From contig OW569345.1 in NCBI GenBank assembly GCA_937625935.1, forward strand, positions 310,001 to 374,000: a stretch of 64,000 bases of DNA, given 5' to 3'. The notes below the pieces were generated by a model that was given only the letters and a program-made list of their open reading frames with translations, did no database searches and was not told the DNA's origin. The translations under genes and the position numbers were made by a program. The stretch is from Tetramitus jugosus (lineage: Eukaryota; Protista; Heterolobosea). Shown piece by piece: positions 12,764-28,358 of the stretch. How positions within the stretch are numbered: position 1 is the stretch's first letter; each line of letters opens with the position of its first letter.

Positions 12764-15718
12764 ATGAGAAATCGCTTCTTCAAACAGCTGGCCACCAACA
12801 GAATCACAACCAACAGCAACAGCAACAGCAACAGCAGCTACAGAAGAACAAGGAATTCTCCGTCATTGCCATTATTTCACACGACGACAACCACCACTGT
12901 TTTCATGACCATGTCGTCGTCAACTCAATCACAACCAACACCACTATCGATTCAGAAAAATCTCCGTGGTTCATCTCCGACCAAGTCGCCAGCCGCACAA
13001 CCACCCTCTATTCTCATCACGGTCTACCTCCAAAAAAAGTTCATTTTTACAAACGATGAGGAAGATGAAATTTTTCATCAAATACAAGGCGCGGAAACTC
13101 TTCACGAACAGTACTACAGGAAGCTTTTGGAGGCAAGATCCGCTTGTGTCAATGCACACCAAACCAAGAGTGATGATGATTTGGAGGAAGGTGAAGATGA
13201 TGCTCGAAGTTTCCAAATGAGCAAGTTTGAAGATATTGGCAGAGAAGAGTCTCACAGATTGCTCAATTCTTTGACTCGTTTTCTCAGTTGGGTTCGTCTT
13301 CAAAGTGCAAAGCATTTCCATGTTATTCACCTCCTGGATCAAAACTCCGTCAGTGATGACCCCGCCAAGAATGAGCGCGCCAATTCTCTGATTTACGGTT
13401 TGAATGACGGTGTTTTGTTGAATGATGATGGTTCTCCCAGCACAGAGAAGAGAGAGCACTTTTTACATTTGAGTGGTGTCAATGCCTTCCAGGATACAGA
13501 CCTCGACAAGATTATCACCAATATCATTGGCAACTACACTAAAAACAAGAGTAGAGATAAGGATGACGAAGATGAAGAAGAAGATGATGATAACAAGCCA
13601 AAAATCTCAGTCATTGGACTTCATACCGAGTCTAGCATCATGTTTCTGATGTATGAGTTGACTACACGATATCCCATGACCTCCATTTCCACATGCTCTG
13701 CACTGACAGCGAGCAGATCTCGATTGCAGCATTTTAACTCGTTGAATCAATTGAAAACTTTGTTCAATGTGAAAACGTTTGATTCAGTGTATGACTTTGA
13801 GCACTATATTCTGACTCAGAATCGCGTAACTCCGACACTCGATGAAGAAGAAATGGCCTTGAAGGATGAGGAATCTGATGAATTCCTTCAGTGTGGTATA
13901 CAATGGAGTACGATTGGTGAGAATAAGGCCAGAATTACAACCATTGAGAAGGAGATTATTTGTTCTCTGTACCGTGACAGCAGTCAGGTTCGATTAAAGA
14001 TGCTCTCTGGTGGAAACACTGGAAGCTGGGTGTTCAAAGTGAGTTCCAAGGACTTTCAAGGCAATGTTCAGTCAGCTACAGTACTAAAAATTGGTAATCG
14101 TCGTTCGATTGTAAGAGAGCGAGTCAACTTCGAACGTGTGGAAGACATTTTGGGCAATAATGCACCAAGAGTACAAGGTTTCACCGAGTATGGAGACAAG
14201 GCAGGTATTAAGTTCGCGTATGCATCCATGATGGAGAGCAATGGTGATGGTGACGAAAACGCAGAGCAGGCTAGTTTCCGATCATTGTACATGTCGCGCA
14301 TATCCGAGGACAAGGTCAAGCAAATCTTGAACACAACCTTCCTGAGTGTCTTGGGAAGATTTTATGCCGGTGCAACATTGGAGAGAGTCAACTTGTTTCA
14401 ACTGTATGACTTTGATGGTAGGGGATGGAATTACCGCATCGGTGGTACAGACAATCCTTCTGTTGTTCGAATGTTTATCAAGGATTACTTTTGTTCCGTT
14501 GAGGGATGTCAGGCATATGTCGAGAAAGATAGCAATCCTATTCCACGACAGGAGATGATTGGCACGGAGCCGTACCTTCAATTCCCGACAGGAATGATCC
14601 TAAATAATCCTGTTGCATTCTTCGCGCAACATCTGGACTGGATCAAGCATAATAGCTATTTGACTCGATCGCATCACTACATTGCCTATCAGCACGGAGA
14701 CTTGAATGGAAGAAATATTATTTTGGATCATTCGTACAATGTTTGGTTGATTGACTTTGAGTACACGGAGAGAACACACGTTCTGAAAGATATCACAAAG
14801 TTGGAAAATGACATTCTGTACGAGTACACACCAATTGAGAACATGGATGTTCTGAAACAAGCTCTTTTGCTGACAGAGGAGTTGCTCAAAGTGAAAGATT
14901 TATCACTACCACTTCCCGAAACGGTCCAAGGAGTGACTGATCCAGGTCTCACACGAGCTTGGAGAATGGTTATCCATTTGAGAAGTATCACAAAGTCAAT
15001 TGTTCGAGATGATAAGAGCTCCTTCCAGATTGAGGTTGTTCTGCTGCGCTATGCGCTCTTTTCGGTCAGTCTGCATCATTTGTCACCACTTCAAAAGACG
15101 TGGGCGCTCGCTGCTGCCAGTGGTTACGCTCAATTGATTCAAAATCGTGCATTCAGAAACAAGAATTACCACTTGAACTTTGTGTCGTTACATCCGGATC
15201 CAGAGACCACGAGATCCAGTGGCCGATTGGCTATCTCTATCTTGCCTGGAAGAAAGGACAGAATGATATCAATCGAAAAGGATGTTGGAGAACTGAAAGC
15301 ACAAAAGATATCAAAGGTATTGTGCTTGTGCTCCCAGTTTGAAGTTGAAAAGCCTTCCCTTGAGAGTCTGATTGATTCATTGTCCCAAAATGGAATCGAA
15401 CTCAAGTTGTTCTCCATTGCAAAGAATGTCGTGCCAACTGTGCACTTGGCCGAAAAGCTATGTGAATGGTTGTATGAAGCAATTGAAACGAAACATGAGA
15501 ATGTGGCTGTTGTTAGTTTGTCTGGTCTCGGAAGATCGGGAACGCTTGCAGCTTGTTTCATTTGTTATCGAGACCCCTCGATCTCACCTGAGACTGCTAT
15601 CAAACTCGTGCGAGATGCCAGAGGAGAAAGAGCCATCGATAGTGAACAAGAGCAGGAGTTTGTGCGTACGTTCCACGATCATCTCAAGCAAGAACGCGGG
15701 GCAGAGTCATCTCCCTGA
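12764..15718 (+). CDS. Three-domain protein: degenerate isochorismatase/nicotinamidase-like domain + APH/TCAD9-type kinase + CDKN3-type PTP-like domain (Cys replaced by Ser)
   Basis: N-domain: SILITVYLQ..IGREESHRL..KISVIGLHTESSIMFLMYEL..STCSALTAS. Kinase: LSGGNTGSWV, TVLKIG, HGDLNGRNII, WLIDF. PTP-like: LAISILPGRKD, VVSLSGLGRSGTLAAC, AIKLVRDARGERAI..EQ..F. No introns. Confidence 0.75.
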   Translation: MRNRFFKQLATNRITTNSNSNSNSSYRRTRNSPSLPLFHTTTTTTVFMTMSSSTQSQPTPLSIQKNLRGSSPTKSPAAQPPSILITVYLQKKFIFTNDEEDEIFHQIQGAETLHEQYYRKLLEARSACVNAHQTKSDDDLEEGEDDARSFQMSKFEDIGREESHRLLNSLTRFLSWVRLQSAKHFHVIHLLDQNSVSDDPAKNERANSLIYGLNDGVLLNDDGSPSTEKREHFLHLSGVNAFQDTDLDKIITNIIGNYTKNKSRDKDDEDEEEDDDNKPKISVIGLHTESSIMFLMYELTTRYPMTSISTCSALTASRSRLQHFNSLNQLKTLFNVKTFDSVYDFEHYILTQNRVTPTLDEEEMALKDEESDEFLQCGIQWSTIGENKARITTIEKEIICSLYRDSSQVRLKMLSGGNTGSWVFKVSSKDFQGNVQSATVLKIGNRRSIVRERVNFERVEDILGNNAPRVQGFTEYGDKAGIKFAYASMMESNGDGDENAEQASFRSLYMSRISEDKVKQILNTTFLSVLGRFYAGATLERVNLFQLYDFDGRGWNYRIGGTDNPSVVRMFIKDYFCSVEGCQAYVEKDSNPIPRQEMIGTEPYLQFPTGMILNNPVAFFAQHLDWIKHNSYLTRSHHYIAYQHGDLNGRNIILDHSYNVWLIDFEYTERTHVLKDITKLENDILYEYTPIENMDVLKQALLLTEELLKVKDLSLPLPETVQGVTDPGLTRAWRMVIHLRSITKSIVRDDKSSFQIEVVLLRYALFSVSLHHLSPLQKTWALAAASGYAQLIQNRAFRNKNYHLNFVSLHPDPETTRSSGRLAISILPGRKDRMISIEKDVGELKAQKISKVLCLCSQFEVEKPSLESLIDSLSQNGIELKLFSIAKNVVPTVHLAEKLCEWLYEAIETKHENVAVVSLSGLGRSGTLAACFICYRDPSISPETAIKLVRDARGERAIDSEQEQEFVRTFHDHLKQERGAESSP

Positions 15719-15759: not shown

Positions 15760-18590
15760 TTAGTATTCGTAGTAGAAGTGACCTGGAATCTTCGCAGATA
15801 GGTACTTCAAGAAGGCATATCCAGTACCCATTAAACCTATGATCGTGAGAACTGTTTTCACCTGGATCTCGGCATCGAGAGGGAACTTGTACGAAAATTG
15901 TCTTCCTCGAATGTACAAGTGGAAGTGCGTCAGTTCTCTTATCATTCTGTCTCTATTGCTCAATATCTTTTTGTTAGTATTTGAGTTGGTGTGATCTTTG
16001 TCTTTGACAATGGTGTTCGATTCTGAATTAAGAGCATCAATCACAAATTGATCGTAATTGCCTGTTACAAAGTTGTTAGAATGATAGGACACATTTGTCA
16101 CAATCATCAAAGCAATTAACATTGTTATAGAAAAGAATGCGAAGTACCAATTCTCCTGCATTCCCCACAGTGTAATCATCGTTTCAATCGCTAGCATAAT
16201 CGTACTAAAAAGAAATAGGTTAAGTCAGCTCCAATGTAAAACCAAACAAACATTACTTACAATAGCACGAGATATGACAGGGACACCGCCCATGATTGCT
16301 TAACAAGCACACTCAACTCTTGTGTCAATTTCACGTAACCTTCGATGCCCCAGTGTAGCGTGAAAGTTCCATGGCCTAACTTAAAATGGAACTCATCGAA
16401 AAACATTTGCATCAACGCAATCATTCTATTGCAGATGAGGTACAGCACACACAGCATGAGAGATATTAATACGAAGCTCATATACCAGTGCAGCAACTTG
16501 TATATAGATGATATCCATCCATAGTATCCCAAGGAAGTCGCATGTGTCGCTTTCATGAGCGCCAACTCCGCCTTGATATCACTCGTAACATCCATTACAA
16601 TGAAGCAATATGCTACATTCGCATAAATAAATGAGAAGAGCACAGCCATCATAGCCTTTCGATTGTACAGCTTTCTACTATTCGTATGGAACAAGGTGTC
16701 ATCCTCTTCGCCCACATTAATATTGACATCCAACTGCGATAAGAGAAGTTCCTTTTCCGACTCCTTGTCAAACTTATTCTCAAAGTCTTTCGAGTAGTTG
16801 GATGAGAAAAGCTTCAACGCAGCCCATTTCACACAGAAAATCATGGATATGAAAGCACTCAATGGAATAAGATAGTAGAACATATGTTGGAGAACATGCA
16901 GAACGTATTCAATTCGATCAAACTGATCATCATACAATGGAAAAGATGAAGTGTACATAATAGCTGCATAGCTCAGACTAATAGCAAACATCAGAAGCAT
17001 GAGGGATCGGTGAATAGCAATCCAGATATTACTCGTTCCATCTTGATAATAAATTGCGAATGATTCAAGAACCCATAGTACAACTCTGTCAGAACGAATT
17101 AAACGATCAGCTTTTTGTGCGATATCCTTCTGCTTATTCTTACGTCGGTATTGAATATAGCTTATCGTATAACGCAACAAATTGAACAATGGAATAACAA
17201 TTAGCAGCAGGGCACAAAGAACTGCTCCAATTGTGCACAAGATCGGCAAAACATATATGCGATATATACTCTCGTTTGATATCATCTCCTTCTTGGAAGA
17301 ATAGAGCAATCGACACTGCTCATGAATACAGTAGTTATTCACAAAATAGACATCATCAATATAAATCTCGCTTAAAATATCAGAGTACACAGCGGATGAT
17401 TGTTGAAAGGCTACATTGCCCAGCAACTTTGATCTTGATATTTTAACCATCGACTCCACAGAATAAAGAACTCCTCCTTGATAAATTGCAGTGTTGTTGG
17501 CGAACACACTCTCATTGACGTAAACATTAGAGGAAAAAAGAACTGCTATACCGGCACCCTTTCCATAGGGTTCTGAATCATCTGCTGCCTTATACGAAGG
17601 GACATTACCAAAGAAATCGGATCGTCTCACTTGAAAGTTGCTCACAGCATTCACCACGAGCTTGTTGTACTCATCGTGAACGACACTGTCTCTCAATACA
17701 GCTCTATTCTTTCGAACATCACACCGAGTCACCGACACATTATGAGAATAATAGACACACATGGCACCACCCGTTGCAGCCATGTTCTCAATCATTTGTA
17801 CATGATCAACGTTAATGTTACTTGATCGACTGATCATGATTGCGCCTCCACAGGGTATCTCCAATTCAGGTCTCGTTTCTTGCAAATTCCAGACAGTTGC
17901 CCCAGACAGCACCAAGTACTTGAGAGTAATATTGGTCGAATTATGAATCATAAACACTTGTCCAATCACACTGAAAGCCACTACTCGAGCCAACTCATCA
18001 TCCGGCACGAATGGTGCATTCTTCTGAGTCACCACTTGAGAAGTGATCGTTAAGCGCTTGGCCTGATTCACAAACACTTCCCTCTCCAGGTAATGAATAC
18101 CAGGAGACAAATAGATGACAGTCTCTCTCTCCACTGCCATGTTCATCTCTTCTCTCACCTTTCCATCCACATCATGATCATTCGCTACAGATGATACCTC
18201 ATCAACCGTAGCTCTCTCAAGCCAAACATTTTCATCATTATCACTACTCATACCATGCTCGGAGCTACTACTACTTGTGCCAAACACGGAGACAATCCGA
18301 GGTGGTGGAGAATGATCCTTTCCTTGATGAACAAGAGACAAGTCAACAGCTCGTTGAATGGTTCTCACAGGTGCATGAATCGTTCCATTCCATGCATCAT
18401 TACCATTCATAGAGTTTACATAGATCTCCAACAACCCAACAGTGTCACCCGTAGTCGTAGCAGAAGCACAACAATATGATGCTTTCAACACCAAAAACAC
18501 CAACAAGAGCAACCATGAGGATGATATCAAACGATGAAGAGCCATGGGAGGTGGTAATGATGATGATGATGATGGAGATATCCTCATCAT
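15760..18590 (-). CDS. Signal peptide + right-handed beta-helix ectodomain + TM helix + gustatory-receptor-like (7TMIC) domain (2 exons; intron 16205-16260)
   Basis: IYVNSMNGNDAWNGTIHAPVRTIQRAV (DUF1565/pectin-lyase-type start); GGA/GAG..F..N beta-helix turns; eight hydrophobic segments after the ectodomain; C-terminal RELTHFHLYIRGRQFSYKFPLDAEIQVKTVLTIIGLMGTGYAFLKYL. GTAAGT..TTTTAG intron joins TT|T in frame. Confidence 0.7.
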
Positions 18591-23764: not shown

Positions 23765-26700
23765 TTATTTAGATGTTATCCGATATCCGGCTATCTGTTT
23801 GTATGCTTGTTCTTGCGCACTGCCGCTAGTCACTACTGGTGATAAACTTTGAGATAACTTCAACTGCTTCCATTCATCACTTTCCTGCAAATATTTTTGC
23901 AGCATTGTTTCGAGTGCTTGTCTTTTAATCGGTTTTGTTAATACCTCGTCCATTCCAGATTCCAAACATCGCTGTTGGAAAGATTCCTCTGATGAAGCTG
24001 TGAGACCTATGATCGGTATTCGATATGGCTGTGTGTTCCCAATCCGTGCAAACATTTGAGCTTCAACTTCTCGTATGTGACGACTCGTTTCTAGTCCATC
24101 TAATTCTGGCATGTTTCCATCCATCAATATGATATCATATTCGAACAAGCGAGTGTCTTGAATAGACTCTCTTCGAGCTTCGTGAATAGGAATGTTGAGC
24201 AACGATAGAGCCTCGATACCATTTCCTGCTATCTCAACCTCCACACCTAGAGCTTCAATAATGCGCTTCGTAACTTTTTGGTTAATGGGTTGATCTTCCA
24301 CCATTAACAGCCTAGGTGTCGAATGGAGTCTTTGAAACTTATCGATCACTGTATAAATATATTGGGCTGGTGTGCCACTTCTTTCCTTCAACATTAGTTT
24401 CGTGAACAAAGACAATCGCGTGTTTCTAGGGGAGTTGAAACGATTAATTTCCTTGGATTTCAACATCTCAGGCATCATACTCCTTCGACGATTTTTATGT
24501 TCCTGCACATGTTGAGTTTGAGGTGTGTTGGTCACTGGGAAAGATAATCTTCTGGAAAATGAACTAAATCTTCTCATTGGTCGGATTTCAAATGATACAT
24601 AAATCCTATTCTTATACGAGGTTTCGATATGAGGTTGAGATGAAGCACGACATCGTACTCTGACTTCCTCTGAATGATCGAAATCATGAATCATGCCGCT
24701 CCGAGATGATTCTCCAGATGTTGGTGTTTCGCTCTCATACTGCTCCGCTTCATCATCCTCCTCAAACGAATCCTCATACACTGGATACTTTCGGTGAACG
24801 ACCAAGTCATTGTAAAACAGTTTCTCAATGAGCGACAGATAGATTGGCTTTCGGATGCACAACTTGAATTGGAGCAAAACATCTTCAAACACACCTCCTT
24901 TGAGAAATAGAGTCAAAACCATTAATGGTGTCGAAGGAGAGCATGACAATCTCTTGTTCGAAGCTGTTATCGTTTTCCGCACCCTTCTGATGAGAGGTAC
25001 AATGTCTTCGTCACCATCAAACACCAAGCATCCCTCATCAATAATAATTGCCTCAATCGGATCGACAATATAGGTAGATTGATTGTCAAGCACCTCTGAA
25101 ATGGAAGAGGCCAATAAATATTTCTCATTAAAATCGCTCATGTACTTGCACATGACAGTTGCCACTTCAAAATTATCGATGATGAGAAGAGTTTGTCCTC
25201 GATTCTGTGTCGATCCCGCATGCGAGTCATCTCCATCGAACACCCCATCAGAAACCTGAGAGAAAAAGGGAGTGGTGGTCGATGAAGCTGAATTGACATC
25301 ACTCCTCACATTTACCGTGTATACTTGATTTTCTCCAGAATCATTCAGAATCACGATGTTCTGCTTGTCATCGCCATTCACATCGACAAACACGGCATTT
25401 CGGCTCCTTCTTCGCTCATGGATTGCTTGATATTGAGTATCGTTCTCATATGAGCTGCTAAACTCACCATAATTGAATGTGTTTGAAAAGTCCTTGTTGT
25501 GTTGTCCGTCCACTGCTTCTGTTTCTGGCTCCTCTTCCTTTGGTCCATAGATGTTGCAGCTCGAAGTCACTTCATCATCAACCTTTAGAGGCTCGACTTG
25601 TGGAGAAGTATCGATCGATGGCTTCTTCAATGTCACTGTGAACCAAAACTTTGATCCCTCACCAACTCTACTCTTCACACCAATGTCACCATCCATGATG
25701 GACACCAATTGTTTGCAAATCGCTAAGCCAACACCTGTGCCTTCGTACCTTCTCTTTGCCGAGTTGTCAACCTGAGAAAACATTTTAAATAATTTCTTTT
25801 GGTCATCCTTGGATATACCGATGCCACTATCAATAACTTTGACAGACACCACAATTTCATCCTCATTCTCACTCTCTAGATCAACGTTCACTATAATTTG
25901 TCCATGGTCCGTAAACTTGACAGCATTCGACACCAAATTAGACACAATCTGCTGGAATCTGTTTGAATCACCAATAAGTCGGCGAGGAAGTGTCTTGGGT
26001 ATGTACACTGCAATGTCCAACGATTTTTCATAGGCTTTCTGAGCCACGACATCAATGACGTCCTCTATACTCTGGGGAAGATCGAAGACTTCAGGATTCA
26101 GAGTTAGAGTCCCCATCTCCAATTTCGAGTAATCTAAAATATCTGAAATGACAATCAATAAATGTCGAGCAGATTTTTGGATAATCTTGGCATTGTCACG
26201 CATATCATCAATCTCATCACAATCATCATGTATCATCTCACTCAACAATTGAATGGCATTGATTGGTGTTTTTAGCTCATGAGATACAATGGACAGGAAA
26301 CGACTCTTTGCCTTCATTTCAGCCACGTCTTCCAACACTGTTTCCTTCTCTTGTCTGCTCTCAATGCTTCGAATACCTAGAACGTAGACATCTTCGCCCA
26401 TACAGCTCTGAATCTTGGAAATAATCTCTAAAGCCAAGTGCTTGCCTTGCTTTGTCCGACCAATGCATTCAAAAATAACCTTTCTGGGAATGTTGTTGTT
26501 CATATCAGAAGAGGTTTCATTGGTCAACTTGGCAATGTCTTGGTGCCCCATGAGACAATCAAAGGGTGCTTCGACAAACAAATCGCGCAAGTCAATGTGC
26601 TTACAATCGGTTATTGAGTATCCGAACAACCGTTGAAATGCAGGGTTCACATCTAAAATCTTACCGTCCTTGTGAATGACAATAGCCTCAGTAGTCACCA

Positions 26701-27982
26701 TCATCATATCGAAACAGTGCTTCATTTGACTCTGAAGTCTCTTTTGTTGATTCACCATAAAGTAGTAAAAGAAGAGAATGCACATCTTGACTGGTAGAAC
26801 ACAACCGAGAATCATGGACACATGATTCAATTGCACAAATGATGGGGAAAACGAAGGCAACATGAGTATAAATCCCATGTGAATCAAGTAAATGGCAATG
26901 ATTGCAATCAGTCTTGTGATCAAAATGCCAGAAAATACGAGTGGGACGAGCAGCCATTTGACCAATTGGAGCACACTCATTGAATCAATTGTCTTGACTC
27001 CTCCAAACACGAGTGCAATATATGGCATCAAGTAGGAGAAAAAGAGCAACGAGTTCACTGACCATACAACCATTGATCTTCTTGTGCTTAATCTCTTGGT
27101 TGTGGTTGCCTCGAGGTTGTCATCTGATGATGTGACACGACTACTATTGTCGCCCACATTCTCAACTATCGGTTGGTTGACTGCACCTCTTCCATACCGC
27201 TCCCGAACACCCAACCATTCCAAAATGAGCATCACCGTAAACAGAACGAGCATCACCAAATACAGCGGACTATTATCGGGCACCAACAGCGCACGAGAGA
27301 CAAAGCTATCATACACTGTGAACGCCAAATAAAAGCACATTGCAACCATGACGCTCTGATGGATTAAAACTTGTGATGAAGTATACAAAAAACAAGTGGG
27401 TGCTTGAAACAACAATGAAAACAATGAATTTTCATTGTATCGCCAAAAACTCTCTGATTTGACAAAAGCTTGTATCTGAGCAATTTCATTGAACTCTCCA
27501 GAAGAATGATTGTGATCATTGCTTGTATCATTGTTGTTGCTATCGTCTTCGCGAGCACTGTTGTTGTTATCATTGTTATTATTCGTATTAGTATTGTAAT
27601 TGTTATTGTAAGTATTGTTGGTTGTTGTAGCTCTTGGTGCGTGATCCACGGGTGACGCAGTTGTTGAGCATGACTGCCGCCTCAGCACACGATTCACTGT
27701 TGTCGGGGACAGTGATCGTGTAATGTGAATATTGTGACTGCTGCTACTTCTCCGTTCATTGTTCTGACCGGATCTCGTTGTTGGCGTGTGACTGTTACTG
27801 TTGTTGTTACTGGCACTGGTACTGTTACCACTATTGTTGCGACTGCTGCTGCTCTCTTCTTCTTCTGCTTCTGTCGCTAAAAAACTCATTTCTCCTGTTG
27901 CTCTGCCGTTGCTCTTGTTCATGCGAACGACTTCGACTTGTTCTGTTACTGTTACTGTTGCTGTTGCTGTTGCTTGATCCAT
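23765..27982 (-). CDS. Membrane-bound hybrid histidine kinase (TMs, PAS, HisKA, HATPase_c, degenerate REC, REC)
   Basis: KSRFLSIVSHELKTPINAI, NLVSNAVKFT, DSGIGI, GTGVGLAI, PAS-like ILDVNPAFQRLFGYS, receiver LMVEDQPIN..ILMDGNMPELDG..KP. Confidence 0.95.
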   Translation of the reverse strand: MDQATATATVTVTEQVEVVRMNKSNGRATGEMSFLATEAEEEESSSSRNNSGNSTSASNNNSNSHTPTTRSGQNNERRSSSSHNIHITRSLSPTTVNRVLRRQSCSTTASPVDHAPRATTTNNTYNNNYNTNTNNNNDNNNSAREDDSNNNDTSNDHNHSSGEFNEIAQIQAFVKSESFWRYNENSLFSLLFQAPTCFLYTSSQVLIHQSVMVAMCFYLAFTVYDSFVSRALLVPDNSPLYLVMLVLFTVMLILEWLGVRERYGRGAVNQPIVENVGDNSSRVTSSDDNLEATTTKRLSTRRSMVVWSVNSLLFFSYLMPYIALVFGGVKTIDSMSVLQLVKWLLVPLVFSGILITRLIAIIAIYLIHMGFILMLPSFSPSFVQLNHVSMILGCVLPVKMCILFFYYFMVNQQKRLQSQMKHCFDMMMVTTEAIVIHKDGKILDVNPAFQRLFGYSITDCKHIDLRDLFVEAPFDCLMGHQDIAKLTNETSSDMNNNIPRKVIFECIGRTKQGKHLALEIISKIQSCMGEDVYVLGIRSIESRQEKETVLEDVAEMKAKSRFLSIVSHELKTPINAIQLLSEMIHDDCDEIDDMRDNAKIIQKSARHLLIVISDILDYSKLEMGTLTLNPEVFDLPQSIEDVIDVVAQKAYEKSLDIAVYIPKTLPRRLIGDSNRFQQIVSNLVSNAVKFTDHGQIIVNVDLESENEDEIVVSVKVIDSGIGISKDDQKKLFKMFSQVDNSAKRRYEGTGVGLAICKQLVSIMDGDIGVKSRVGEGSKFWFTVTLKKPSIDTSPQVEPLKVDDEVTSSCNIYGPKEEEPETEAVDGQHNKDFSNTFNYGEFSSSYENDTQYQAIHERRRSRNAVFVDVNGDDKQNIVILNDSGENQVYTVNVRSDVNSASSTTTPFFSQVSDGVFDGDDSHAGSTQNRGQTLLIIDNFEVATVMCKYMSDFNEKYLLASSISEVLDNQSTYIVDPIEAIIIDEGCLVFDGDEDIVPLIRRVRKTITASNKRLSCSPSTPLMVLTLFLKGGVFEDVLLQFKLCIRKPIYLSLIEKLFYNDLVVHRKYPVYEDSFEEDDEAEQYESETPTSGESSRSGMIHDFDHSEEVRVRCRASSQPHIETSYKNRIYVSFEIRPMRRFSSFSRRLSFPVTNTPQTQHVQEHKNRRRSMMPEMLKSKEINRFNSPRNTRLSLFTKLMLKERSGTPAQYIYTVIDKFQRLHSTPRLLMVEDQPINQKVTKRIIEALGVEVEIAGNGIEALSLLNIPIHEARRESIQDTRLFEYDIILMDGNMPELDGLETSRHIREVEAQMFARIGNTQPYRIPIIGLTASSEESFQQRCLESGMDEVLTKPIKRQALETMLQKYLQESDEWKQLKLSQSLSPVVTSGSAQEQAYKQIAGYRITSK

Positions 27983-28358
27983 TCCACCACAACGTTTATA
28001 ATAATCATGAAATGTTTTATATTTGCAGTTATTTGAAACAAGTTTTTTTGGTTTTTGGGTGACTGTTCCCCTTTCTCTCACTTCCTTTTCGCGTCTTTTG
28101 TGGAAGGGTTGGGATTCGATTTTTGTCTCTTTAGTTGAAATCACACACAAAAAGAACACTCTTGAACAAAAAATAAATTAGAGGAGGTTTGGTTTGTTTG
28201 TGAATGAAGCGTTGGATCTTATGACTTGTTGGCGATGTTGGAGCTCCTCATCGGAAAGAAATAAAGCCCTACCAGAGTCCAAAAGTTGGTGTGAGAACTT
28301 CTCAAACGGGATGATTTCCCCCCAAGAGAACAAATCGAGTGAAAAAAATCAAAAGCAC

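Follow-up and report, generated by a model that had tools for sequence, protein, structure and literature searches.

A Pmp-type beta-helix joined by an added transmembrane helix to a predicted 7TMIC-fold domain in Tetramitus jugosus and other Heterolobosea

The genome of Tetramitus jugosus CCAP 1588/3C, a bacterivorous soil heterolobosean (PMC11106597), encodes a membrane protein in which a Pmp-type beta-helix is connected via one added transmembrane (TM) helix to a domain with the predicted 7TMIC fold of the insect odorant and gustatory receptors (OR/GR). We regard fold and architecture, which are those proposed in a preliminary description made from the DNA sequence, as very probable. That this protein is a heterolobosean receptor acting as a surface sensory channel is our working model, to which we give a fair degree of probability. 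Coordinates are positions in the window, i.e. the whole stretch of 64,000 nucleotides that was analysed, and amino acid numbers refer to the spliced protein of 924 aa (Table 1).

Table 1. Features of the T. jugosus gene and its product
Feature	Amino acids	Window positions	Strand	Evidence
Exon 1, coding (signal peptide, ectodomain, extra TM, short putative re-entrant helix, TM1-TM4, most of TM5)	1-776 + 2 nt of codon 777	16261..18590	minus	ORF, RNA contigs, Willaertia P0002 E=4e-69
Predicted signal peptide	16-43	18462..18545	minus	hydropathy; hydrophobic stretch at each of the four complete N-termini
DUF1565/Pel9A-type beta-helix N-cap	~55-87	18330..18428	minus	Pfam DUF1565 weak, E=0.044; PF22842 weak on P0001
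Right-handed beta-helix, Pmp type	~156-433	17292..18125	minus	PF13229 E=2.1e-5
Extra (eighth) TM helix, outside the 7TMIC fold	445-470	17181..17258	minus	strongest hydropathy peak
Basic patch, positive-inside signal	482-488	17127..17147	minus	charge count
Predicted 7TMIC-fold domain	~495-924	15760..17108	minus	orthologue model, fold searches, segment mapping, ESM features aa 495-777
Short helix at 7TMIC re-entrant-loop position	~501-514	17049..17090	minus	model helix H53-65
TM1	~522-548
TM2	~556-594
TM3	~644-668
TM4 (long)	~696-739
TM5 (long)	~745-790
Spliceosomal intron, 56 nt, phase 2, within TM5		16205..16260	minus	spliced in X1, X5, X15
Exon 2, coding (end of TM5, TM6, long IL3, TM7a, TM7b, short C-tail)	777-924; stop 15762-15760	15760..16204	minus	P0002 C-terminus match E=3e-21
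TM6	~797-835
Split TM7 (TM7a anchor helix, linker, TM7b putative pore helix)	TM7a ~861-877; TM7b ~889-912	15799..15954	minus	alignment, model

Gene structure, expression and homologues

Two open reading frames on the minus strand, 18590-16257 and 16197-15760, are linked by an intron (GT-AG, 16260-16205). None of the other GT-AG candidates below 130 nt that preserve the frame, seven in all, is as short, and this one alone has a GTAAGT donor. The joint 16204/16261, with 56 nucleotides skipped, is present in contigs from RNA runs of three studies, namely X1 (soil RNA), X5 (oligo-dT RNA) and X15 (type not recorded), as expected from the preliminary description, which had treated both frames as one spliced gene. 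The X15 contig (2596 nt) spans 18145 to 15494, includes the stop codon and lacks this intron alone; no further introns are seen in it between 18145 and 15760. A contig from run X16 retains the intron. Such contigs show the presence of RNA and not single transcripts; the spliced contig holds one open frame. Two separate genes are ruled out by the RNA joints together with the colinear gene of Willaertia, and the spliced frame is real and expressed. Two contigs from X15 cross 18116-18258, one of which has a 12-base gap at 18143, where the ectodomain carries its variable insertion, and probably represents a second allele. Counting the best-supported differences in the RNA runs only, 23 of the 30 listed are synonymous (22% expected), and this excess points to purifying selection.

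The exons were searched separately, and orthologues served as proxies for the joined spliced protein. The homologue on a JGI metagenome contig (P0001, contig L004) shares 52% identity in the membrane part. Two introns are predicted towards the 3' end of its gene; the second (L004 6740-6791) agrees in position and phase with the T. jugosus intron and is followed by the matching last exon. In Willaertia magna the homologue (P0002, ABK040_004770, 1033 aa) is encoded by a single colinear frame, and its match to exon 2 includes 51% identity over TM7. The Naegleria lovaniensis protein (P0004, C9374_000983, 980 aa), the annotated name of which reflects the beta-helix only, is 26-35% identical to that of T. 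jugosus. The remaining matches are fragments near Naegleria or P0001. All full-length homologues have the signal peptide, the beta-helix, the extra TM helix and the seven TMs in this order, and the fusion is conserved from Tetramitus to Naegleria and Willaertia. We infer that the beta-helix was joined to the 7TMIC domain before these lineages split.

With the limited sensitivity of these searches neither homologues clearly outside the Heterolobosea nor an ectodomain-free relative were found, and two scans of metagenome DNA gave no matches. The search for paralogues with the same fusion, which had been suggested beforehand, revealed none in the T. jugosus genome (26,350,207 bases in 56 contigs), where single-exon and profile searches give lower bounds; the 21 loci that were fetched likewise contained none. 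The gene appears to be single-copy in this genome. Its neighbourhood is not conserved, as the neighbouring genes differ among the homologue loci.

Within the window, the convergent neighbour (12764-15718, plus strand, 984 aa) encodes a TCAD9 kinase-like domain (E=4e-39) fused to a CDKN3/dual-specificity phosphatase domain. TCAD9 is mainly a prokaryotic conflict-system domain. By reading of the active-site loop a Ser is found at the expected catalytic Cys, and the phosphatase domain may be a pseudophosphatase. A frame of 1464 aa at 23765-28159 (plus strand) resembles, by inspection, a membrane-bound hybrid histidine kinase with TM, PAS-like, kinase and receiver parts.

Membrane domain and topology

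The fold was modelled for the membrane domain of the N. lovaniensis orthologue using 11 sequences. The model is of low confidence (pLDDT 54, pTM 0.49) and contains seven TM helices in OR-like packing, and the whole domain aligns to OR/GR chains. The best eight rows of the fold search all belong to the OR/GR family, lie 6-8 Z units above unrelated folds and cover nearly the whole target. The superpositions have an rmsd of 4.6-5.4 Å at a sequence identity of 8-10%, and the best Foldseek E-value is 6.6e-3. In the comparison with Orco, MhOr5 and BmGr9 that had been proposed as a check, the orthologue model superposes on the insect chains; as modelled, the membrane domain of the orthologue has the OR/GR fold, starting after the extra helix. 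A single-sequence fold of the exon-1 membrane part was uninformative (pTM 0.31, no meaningful match).

ESM features, those of aa 495-777 included, have their neighbours in the 7TMIC clan (DUF3537 0.88-0.93); a TMEM39 cluster scored 0.94. Identity with TMEM39 was rejected, since a TMEM39 (Tmp39) homologue is encoded by a separate gene (G000:C20:49961-50401, minus strand, E=9e-17); there is a hint that TMEM39 may be related to the 7TMIC fold. Neither the exons nor the orthologues gave any sequence match for the membrane domain in Pfam or the PDB, and HMM matches to 7tm_6, 7tm_7, PF12056 (DUF3537) and PF12129/PHTF1-2_N were absent. A single weak 7tm_7 match in the genome, at E=0.02, falls on L038, a receptor of the GPS-7TM-RGS type. 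Similarity to the adhesion-GPCR-like 7TM domain of L052 has an hhalign probability of 0.3%, and Pfam finds neither GPS nor RGS in the fusion protein.

Of the seven hydrophobic segments described earlier behind the first TM helix, TM1-TM6 appear as peaks, while TM7b falls below the hydropathy cut-off and was assigned by the orthologue model and the alignment. Of the proposed layout, the long TM4-TM5 region and the divided TM7 are recovered in the model, with a short helix at the place of the putative re-entrant loop, and the sequence motifs listed for it are all in place along the spliced protein. The short helix H53-65 (pLDDT about 60) lies inside the OR/GR-aligned range and is aligned to OR/GR N-termini. 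The model helices TM4, TM5 and TM6 measure 51, 45 and 38 residues, which is long, as in the 7TMIC anchor domain. The extracellular loops (EL1 12, EL2 29, EL3 7 aa) are shorter than the intracellular ones (IL1 53, IL2 47, IL3 69 aa), and the C-tail of 14 aa is predicted to be extracellular. TM7 is split in the model (H480-496, a break of 11 residues, H508-544), which is conserved in four sequences with 20 of 64 columns invariant. It is the best-conserved part of the membrane domain; identity to N. lovaniensis amounts to 8/17, 6/11 and 16/37 across it versus 2/28 for TM1. The animal GR/GRL motif (T/S)Yhhhhh(Q/K/E)(F/L/M), described as diagnostic but not definitive (PMC7746228), is mostly missing from TM7: with K as the anchor, a single one of its four positions fits exactly, and Y stands in place of F/L/M.

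The extra helix peaks at aa 450-468 (KD 2.9) and is present in all orthologues, and OR/GR alignments begin past it, at model residue 45-56. Both this helix and the basic RRKNKQK patch are found where the preliminary description had placed them. Its proposal that the helix keeps the ectodomain outside and the channel N-terminus inside agrees with hydropathy and charge, on which the topology rests: ten K+R are counted in aa 471-503 after the helix versus four in aa 415-444 before it, and the N-glycosylation sequons fall mostly in the ectodomain (7 of 9). These features fit an ectodomain outside and a 7TMIC start inside. As all orthologues have the eighth helix and the signal peptide ahead of the domain, the protein as a whole does not have seven TMs, and in contrast to the intracellular N-terminus of 7TMICs its mature N-terminus is predicted outside, with only the start of the 7TM domain cytoplasmic. 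It is therefore not filed as a canonical 7TMIC, but probably carries a 7TMIC-fold domain and works like one.

Ectodomain and other beta-helix proteins

Met1, Met2 or Met16 are candidate start codons, and a hydrophobic segment at aa 15-46 is in line with the signal peptide predicted earlier. The expected pectin-lyase-like beta-helix of about 400 aa is partly borne out: beta-helix coils occupy aa ~156-433, but the remainder comprises the N-cap and an insertion (aa ~88-155) which is poorly conserved and mostly missing in P0001, and the coils are of the Pmp and not of the enzyme type. PF13229 (Beta_helix) is matched in the genome search with 27.2 bits over cut-off, and Chlam_PMP weakly in all four orthologues (best E=1.5e-9). 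GGA(I/M/V)-like and FxxN-like repeats occur at about 248, 274, 345 and 372; such coil repeats, GGA(I/L/V) and FxxN, are shared with the beta-helices of Chlamydia Pmp-type proteins and Rhombotarget A. The cysteines C247, C278, C421 and C426 are invariant. In the alignment, conservation over the 42 residues directly preceding the extra helix is about double that of the remaining beta-helix, a hint of a fixed connection to the membrane domain.

Among solved structures, the ectodomain is closest in sequence to Rhombotarget A (9cdu, E=0.0095), followed by pectate lyase B (7bbv, E=0.096). PL1 and PL9 lyases have a conserved calcium-binding acidic cluster and a catalytic Arg/Lys, and PL1 enzymes a WxDH motif. 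The acidic cluster is absent from the ectodomain, the WxDH of 7bbv is unmatched in the alignment, and H166, D404 and K433 are the only invariant charged residues. Since the catalytic features of lyases are not conserved, the ectodomain is more likely to bind than to catalyse.

The beta-helix profile has 40 matches in about 25 loci of the genome, and four fetched ones are long frames ending in a 7TM-RGS-type module, with GPS and RGS confirmed by Pfam in two. A beta-helix ectodomain would thus be a common surface module in T. jugosus. Adhesion-GPCR-like receptors of 2000-2400 aa with GPS, 7TM and C-terminal RGS are encoded at L038, L046, L052, L055 and L057 (G000 C32, C40, C14, C16); L052 and L057 also have fibrinogen-C and REJ domains, and four of the five have beta-helix matches. 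A Pmp-repeat beta-helix protein of 1452 aa (L056:1623-5978, G000 C46) ends in a different multi-pass domain, which shows no relation to the 7TMIC profile.

Comparison with known 7TMICs and possible function

The insect receptors BmGr9, DmGr43a, DmGr64a, MhOr5 and Orco share the predicted fold with a protein that is only 8-10% identical to them. In comparison to insect GR/OR, the T. jugosus protein has in addition a signal peptide, the ectodomain of about 400 aa, an eighth helix and long IL1 and IL3; it appears to be single-copy and lacks most of the TM7 motif. The 7TMIC fold is likewise combined with a separate N-terminal repeat domain in GRL1 (MORN repeats) of kinetoplastids, which like T. 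jugosus belong to the Discoba, and in GrlHz-WD40 fusions; the MORN domain is described as distinct and cytoplasmic, the WD40 domain as an N-terminal extension of the 7-TM core (PMC9998090). In contrast to the T. jugosus protein, their descriptions include no signal peptide and no extra TM, and no sequence search from the T. jugosus protein recovered them. Plant DUF3537 proteins, protist GRLs and PHTF (Class-A/Class-B) resemble it in ESM neighbourhood, long intracellular loops and a divergent TM7 motif, but no ectodomain is described for them, and the T. jugosus protein has no PF12056 or PF12129 match. The GPS-7TM-RGS receptors of the same genome also place a beta-helix extracellular module ahead of a multi-pass membrane domain. 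The fusion differs from them in the inverted 7TMIC topology, due to which the extra helix is needed, and in having no GPS, REJ or RGS domain.

In the 2023 screen eukaryotic structural matches were judged by seven TMs and an intracellular N-terminus, a filter which can drop real members of the fold; since proteins with more than six TMs all passed its sequence-based step, an orthologue could still stand in its data tables (bioRxiv 10.1101/2023.08.30.555482). Among Discoba its main text discusses kinetoplastids only, and Naegleria is not mentioned in the main text of the three screens. The layout of signal peptide, ectodomain and extra TM is not described for other 7TMICs in the main text of these screens, nor is it indicated by title or abstract in the 7TMIC papers listed (11 of 16). 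The fusions described there are MORN and WD40 only, consistent with the earlier statement that the architecture is not known from described GRLs. It is a real and conserved new variant within a known superfamily, and as a second discoban lineage beside the kinetoplastids it is relevant to rooting the eukaryotic 7TMIC tree.

Knowledge of 7TMIC function comes almost entirely from proteins of insects (bioRxiv 10.1101/2023.08.30.555482), and for protist 7TMICs no function is reported in the literature covered. In our working model the signal peptide would export a glycosylated, disulfide-capped beta-helix, and the extra helix would bring the chain back to the cytoplasm, so that the 7TMIC domain keeps its normal orientation. 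By analogy to the family, TM7a and the TM4-6 anchor would hold together a tetramer whose cation pore is lined by TM7b, and the protein is, somewhat probably, an ion channel. More speculatively, the non-catalytic beta-helix would bind a surface or macromolecular cue, such as another amoeba or a glycan or protein of a prey cell, and binding would trigger or tune opening via the conserved membrane-proximal base. We consider it doubtful that the ectodomain takes part in gating, and only tentatively suggest a contact-gated channel in which binding of the beta-helix to prey, substrate or another cell opens the pore. If true, the superfamily would have been adapted from small-molecule sensing to the sensing of macromolecules or touch.

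Ligands of OR/GR bind inside the TM bundle. Beta-helix modules are found on many unrelated surface proteins and receptors of this genome (the roughly 25 loci with 40 matches), so that gating would not have to involve the ectodomain. The protein may instead be an ordinary channel gated by small molecules, with the beta-helix for anchoring or localisation only (adhesion, food cup, cyst wall). This is conceivable, although the fusion has been kept across lineages at less than 30% identity, no ectodomain-free version was found in our searches and the membrane-proximal end is the best-conserved part of the ectodomain. A protein of the ER or secretory pathway or a non-conducting receptor similar to PHTF, with the beta-helix in the lumen, is rather unlikely. 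The long IL1 is a mark of PHTF-like Class-B proteins, PHTF1 is found mainly in the ER, the gene is single-copy unlike expanded chemoreceptor families, and the TMEM39 cluster ranks high in ESM features. However, Pmp-type beta-helices are surface adhesin modules (PMC11166332), a PHTF1-2_N match is missing, TMEM39 has its own gene, and TM7a/7b are the best-conserved segments.

An active polysaccharide lyase or hydrolase which releases a small ligand for the channel would suit the weak similarity that the ectodomain has with pectate lyase B and the Pel9A-like family. The few invariant charged residues, the missing calcium cluster and WxDH motif, the Pmp-type repeats and Rhombotarget A as the best structural-sequence neighbour make this very unlikely. 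Even slightly less probable is a membrane domain whose likeness to OR/GR is merely that of a helical bundle or is due to convergence, and which falls into a different or new family: the eight top fold rows come from one family, well above unrelated folds and with near-full target coverage, the ESM features as a sequence-based method give the same clan, and similarity to the adhesion-GPCR-like 7TM domain of the genome is lacking. The putative surface sensory channel can be approached experimentally, as non-pathogenic Naegleria and Tetramitus are culturable and location and function are testable. A non-animal 7TMIC with a soluble ectodomain that is expressible alone and can be screened for partners offers an unusually direct route to a ligand.

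In the preprint of the 2023 screen (bioRxiv 10.1101/2023.08.30.555482), the word virus is absent from the main text. Uncharacterised proteins of about 440 aa from the giant viruses Edafosvirus, Mimivirus LCMiAC02 and Catovirus (BFVD A0A3G4ZRZ0, A0A4D5XEV6, A0A1V0SCD1) match the 7TMIC-fold model with Foldseek probabilities of 0.87-0.98, and the ESM cluster at rank 2 is 56% viral. These model-based matches suggest that 7TMIC-fold proteins possibly occur in giant viruses of protists.
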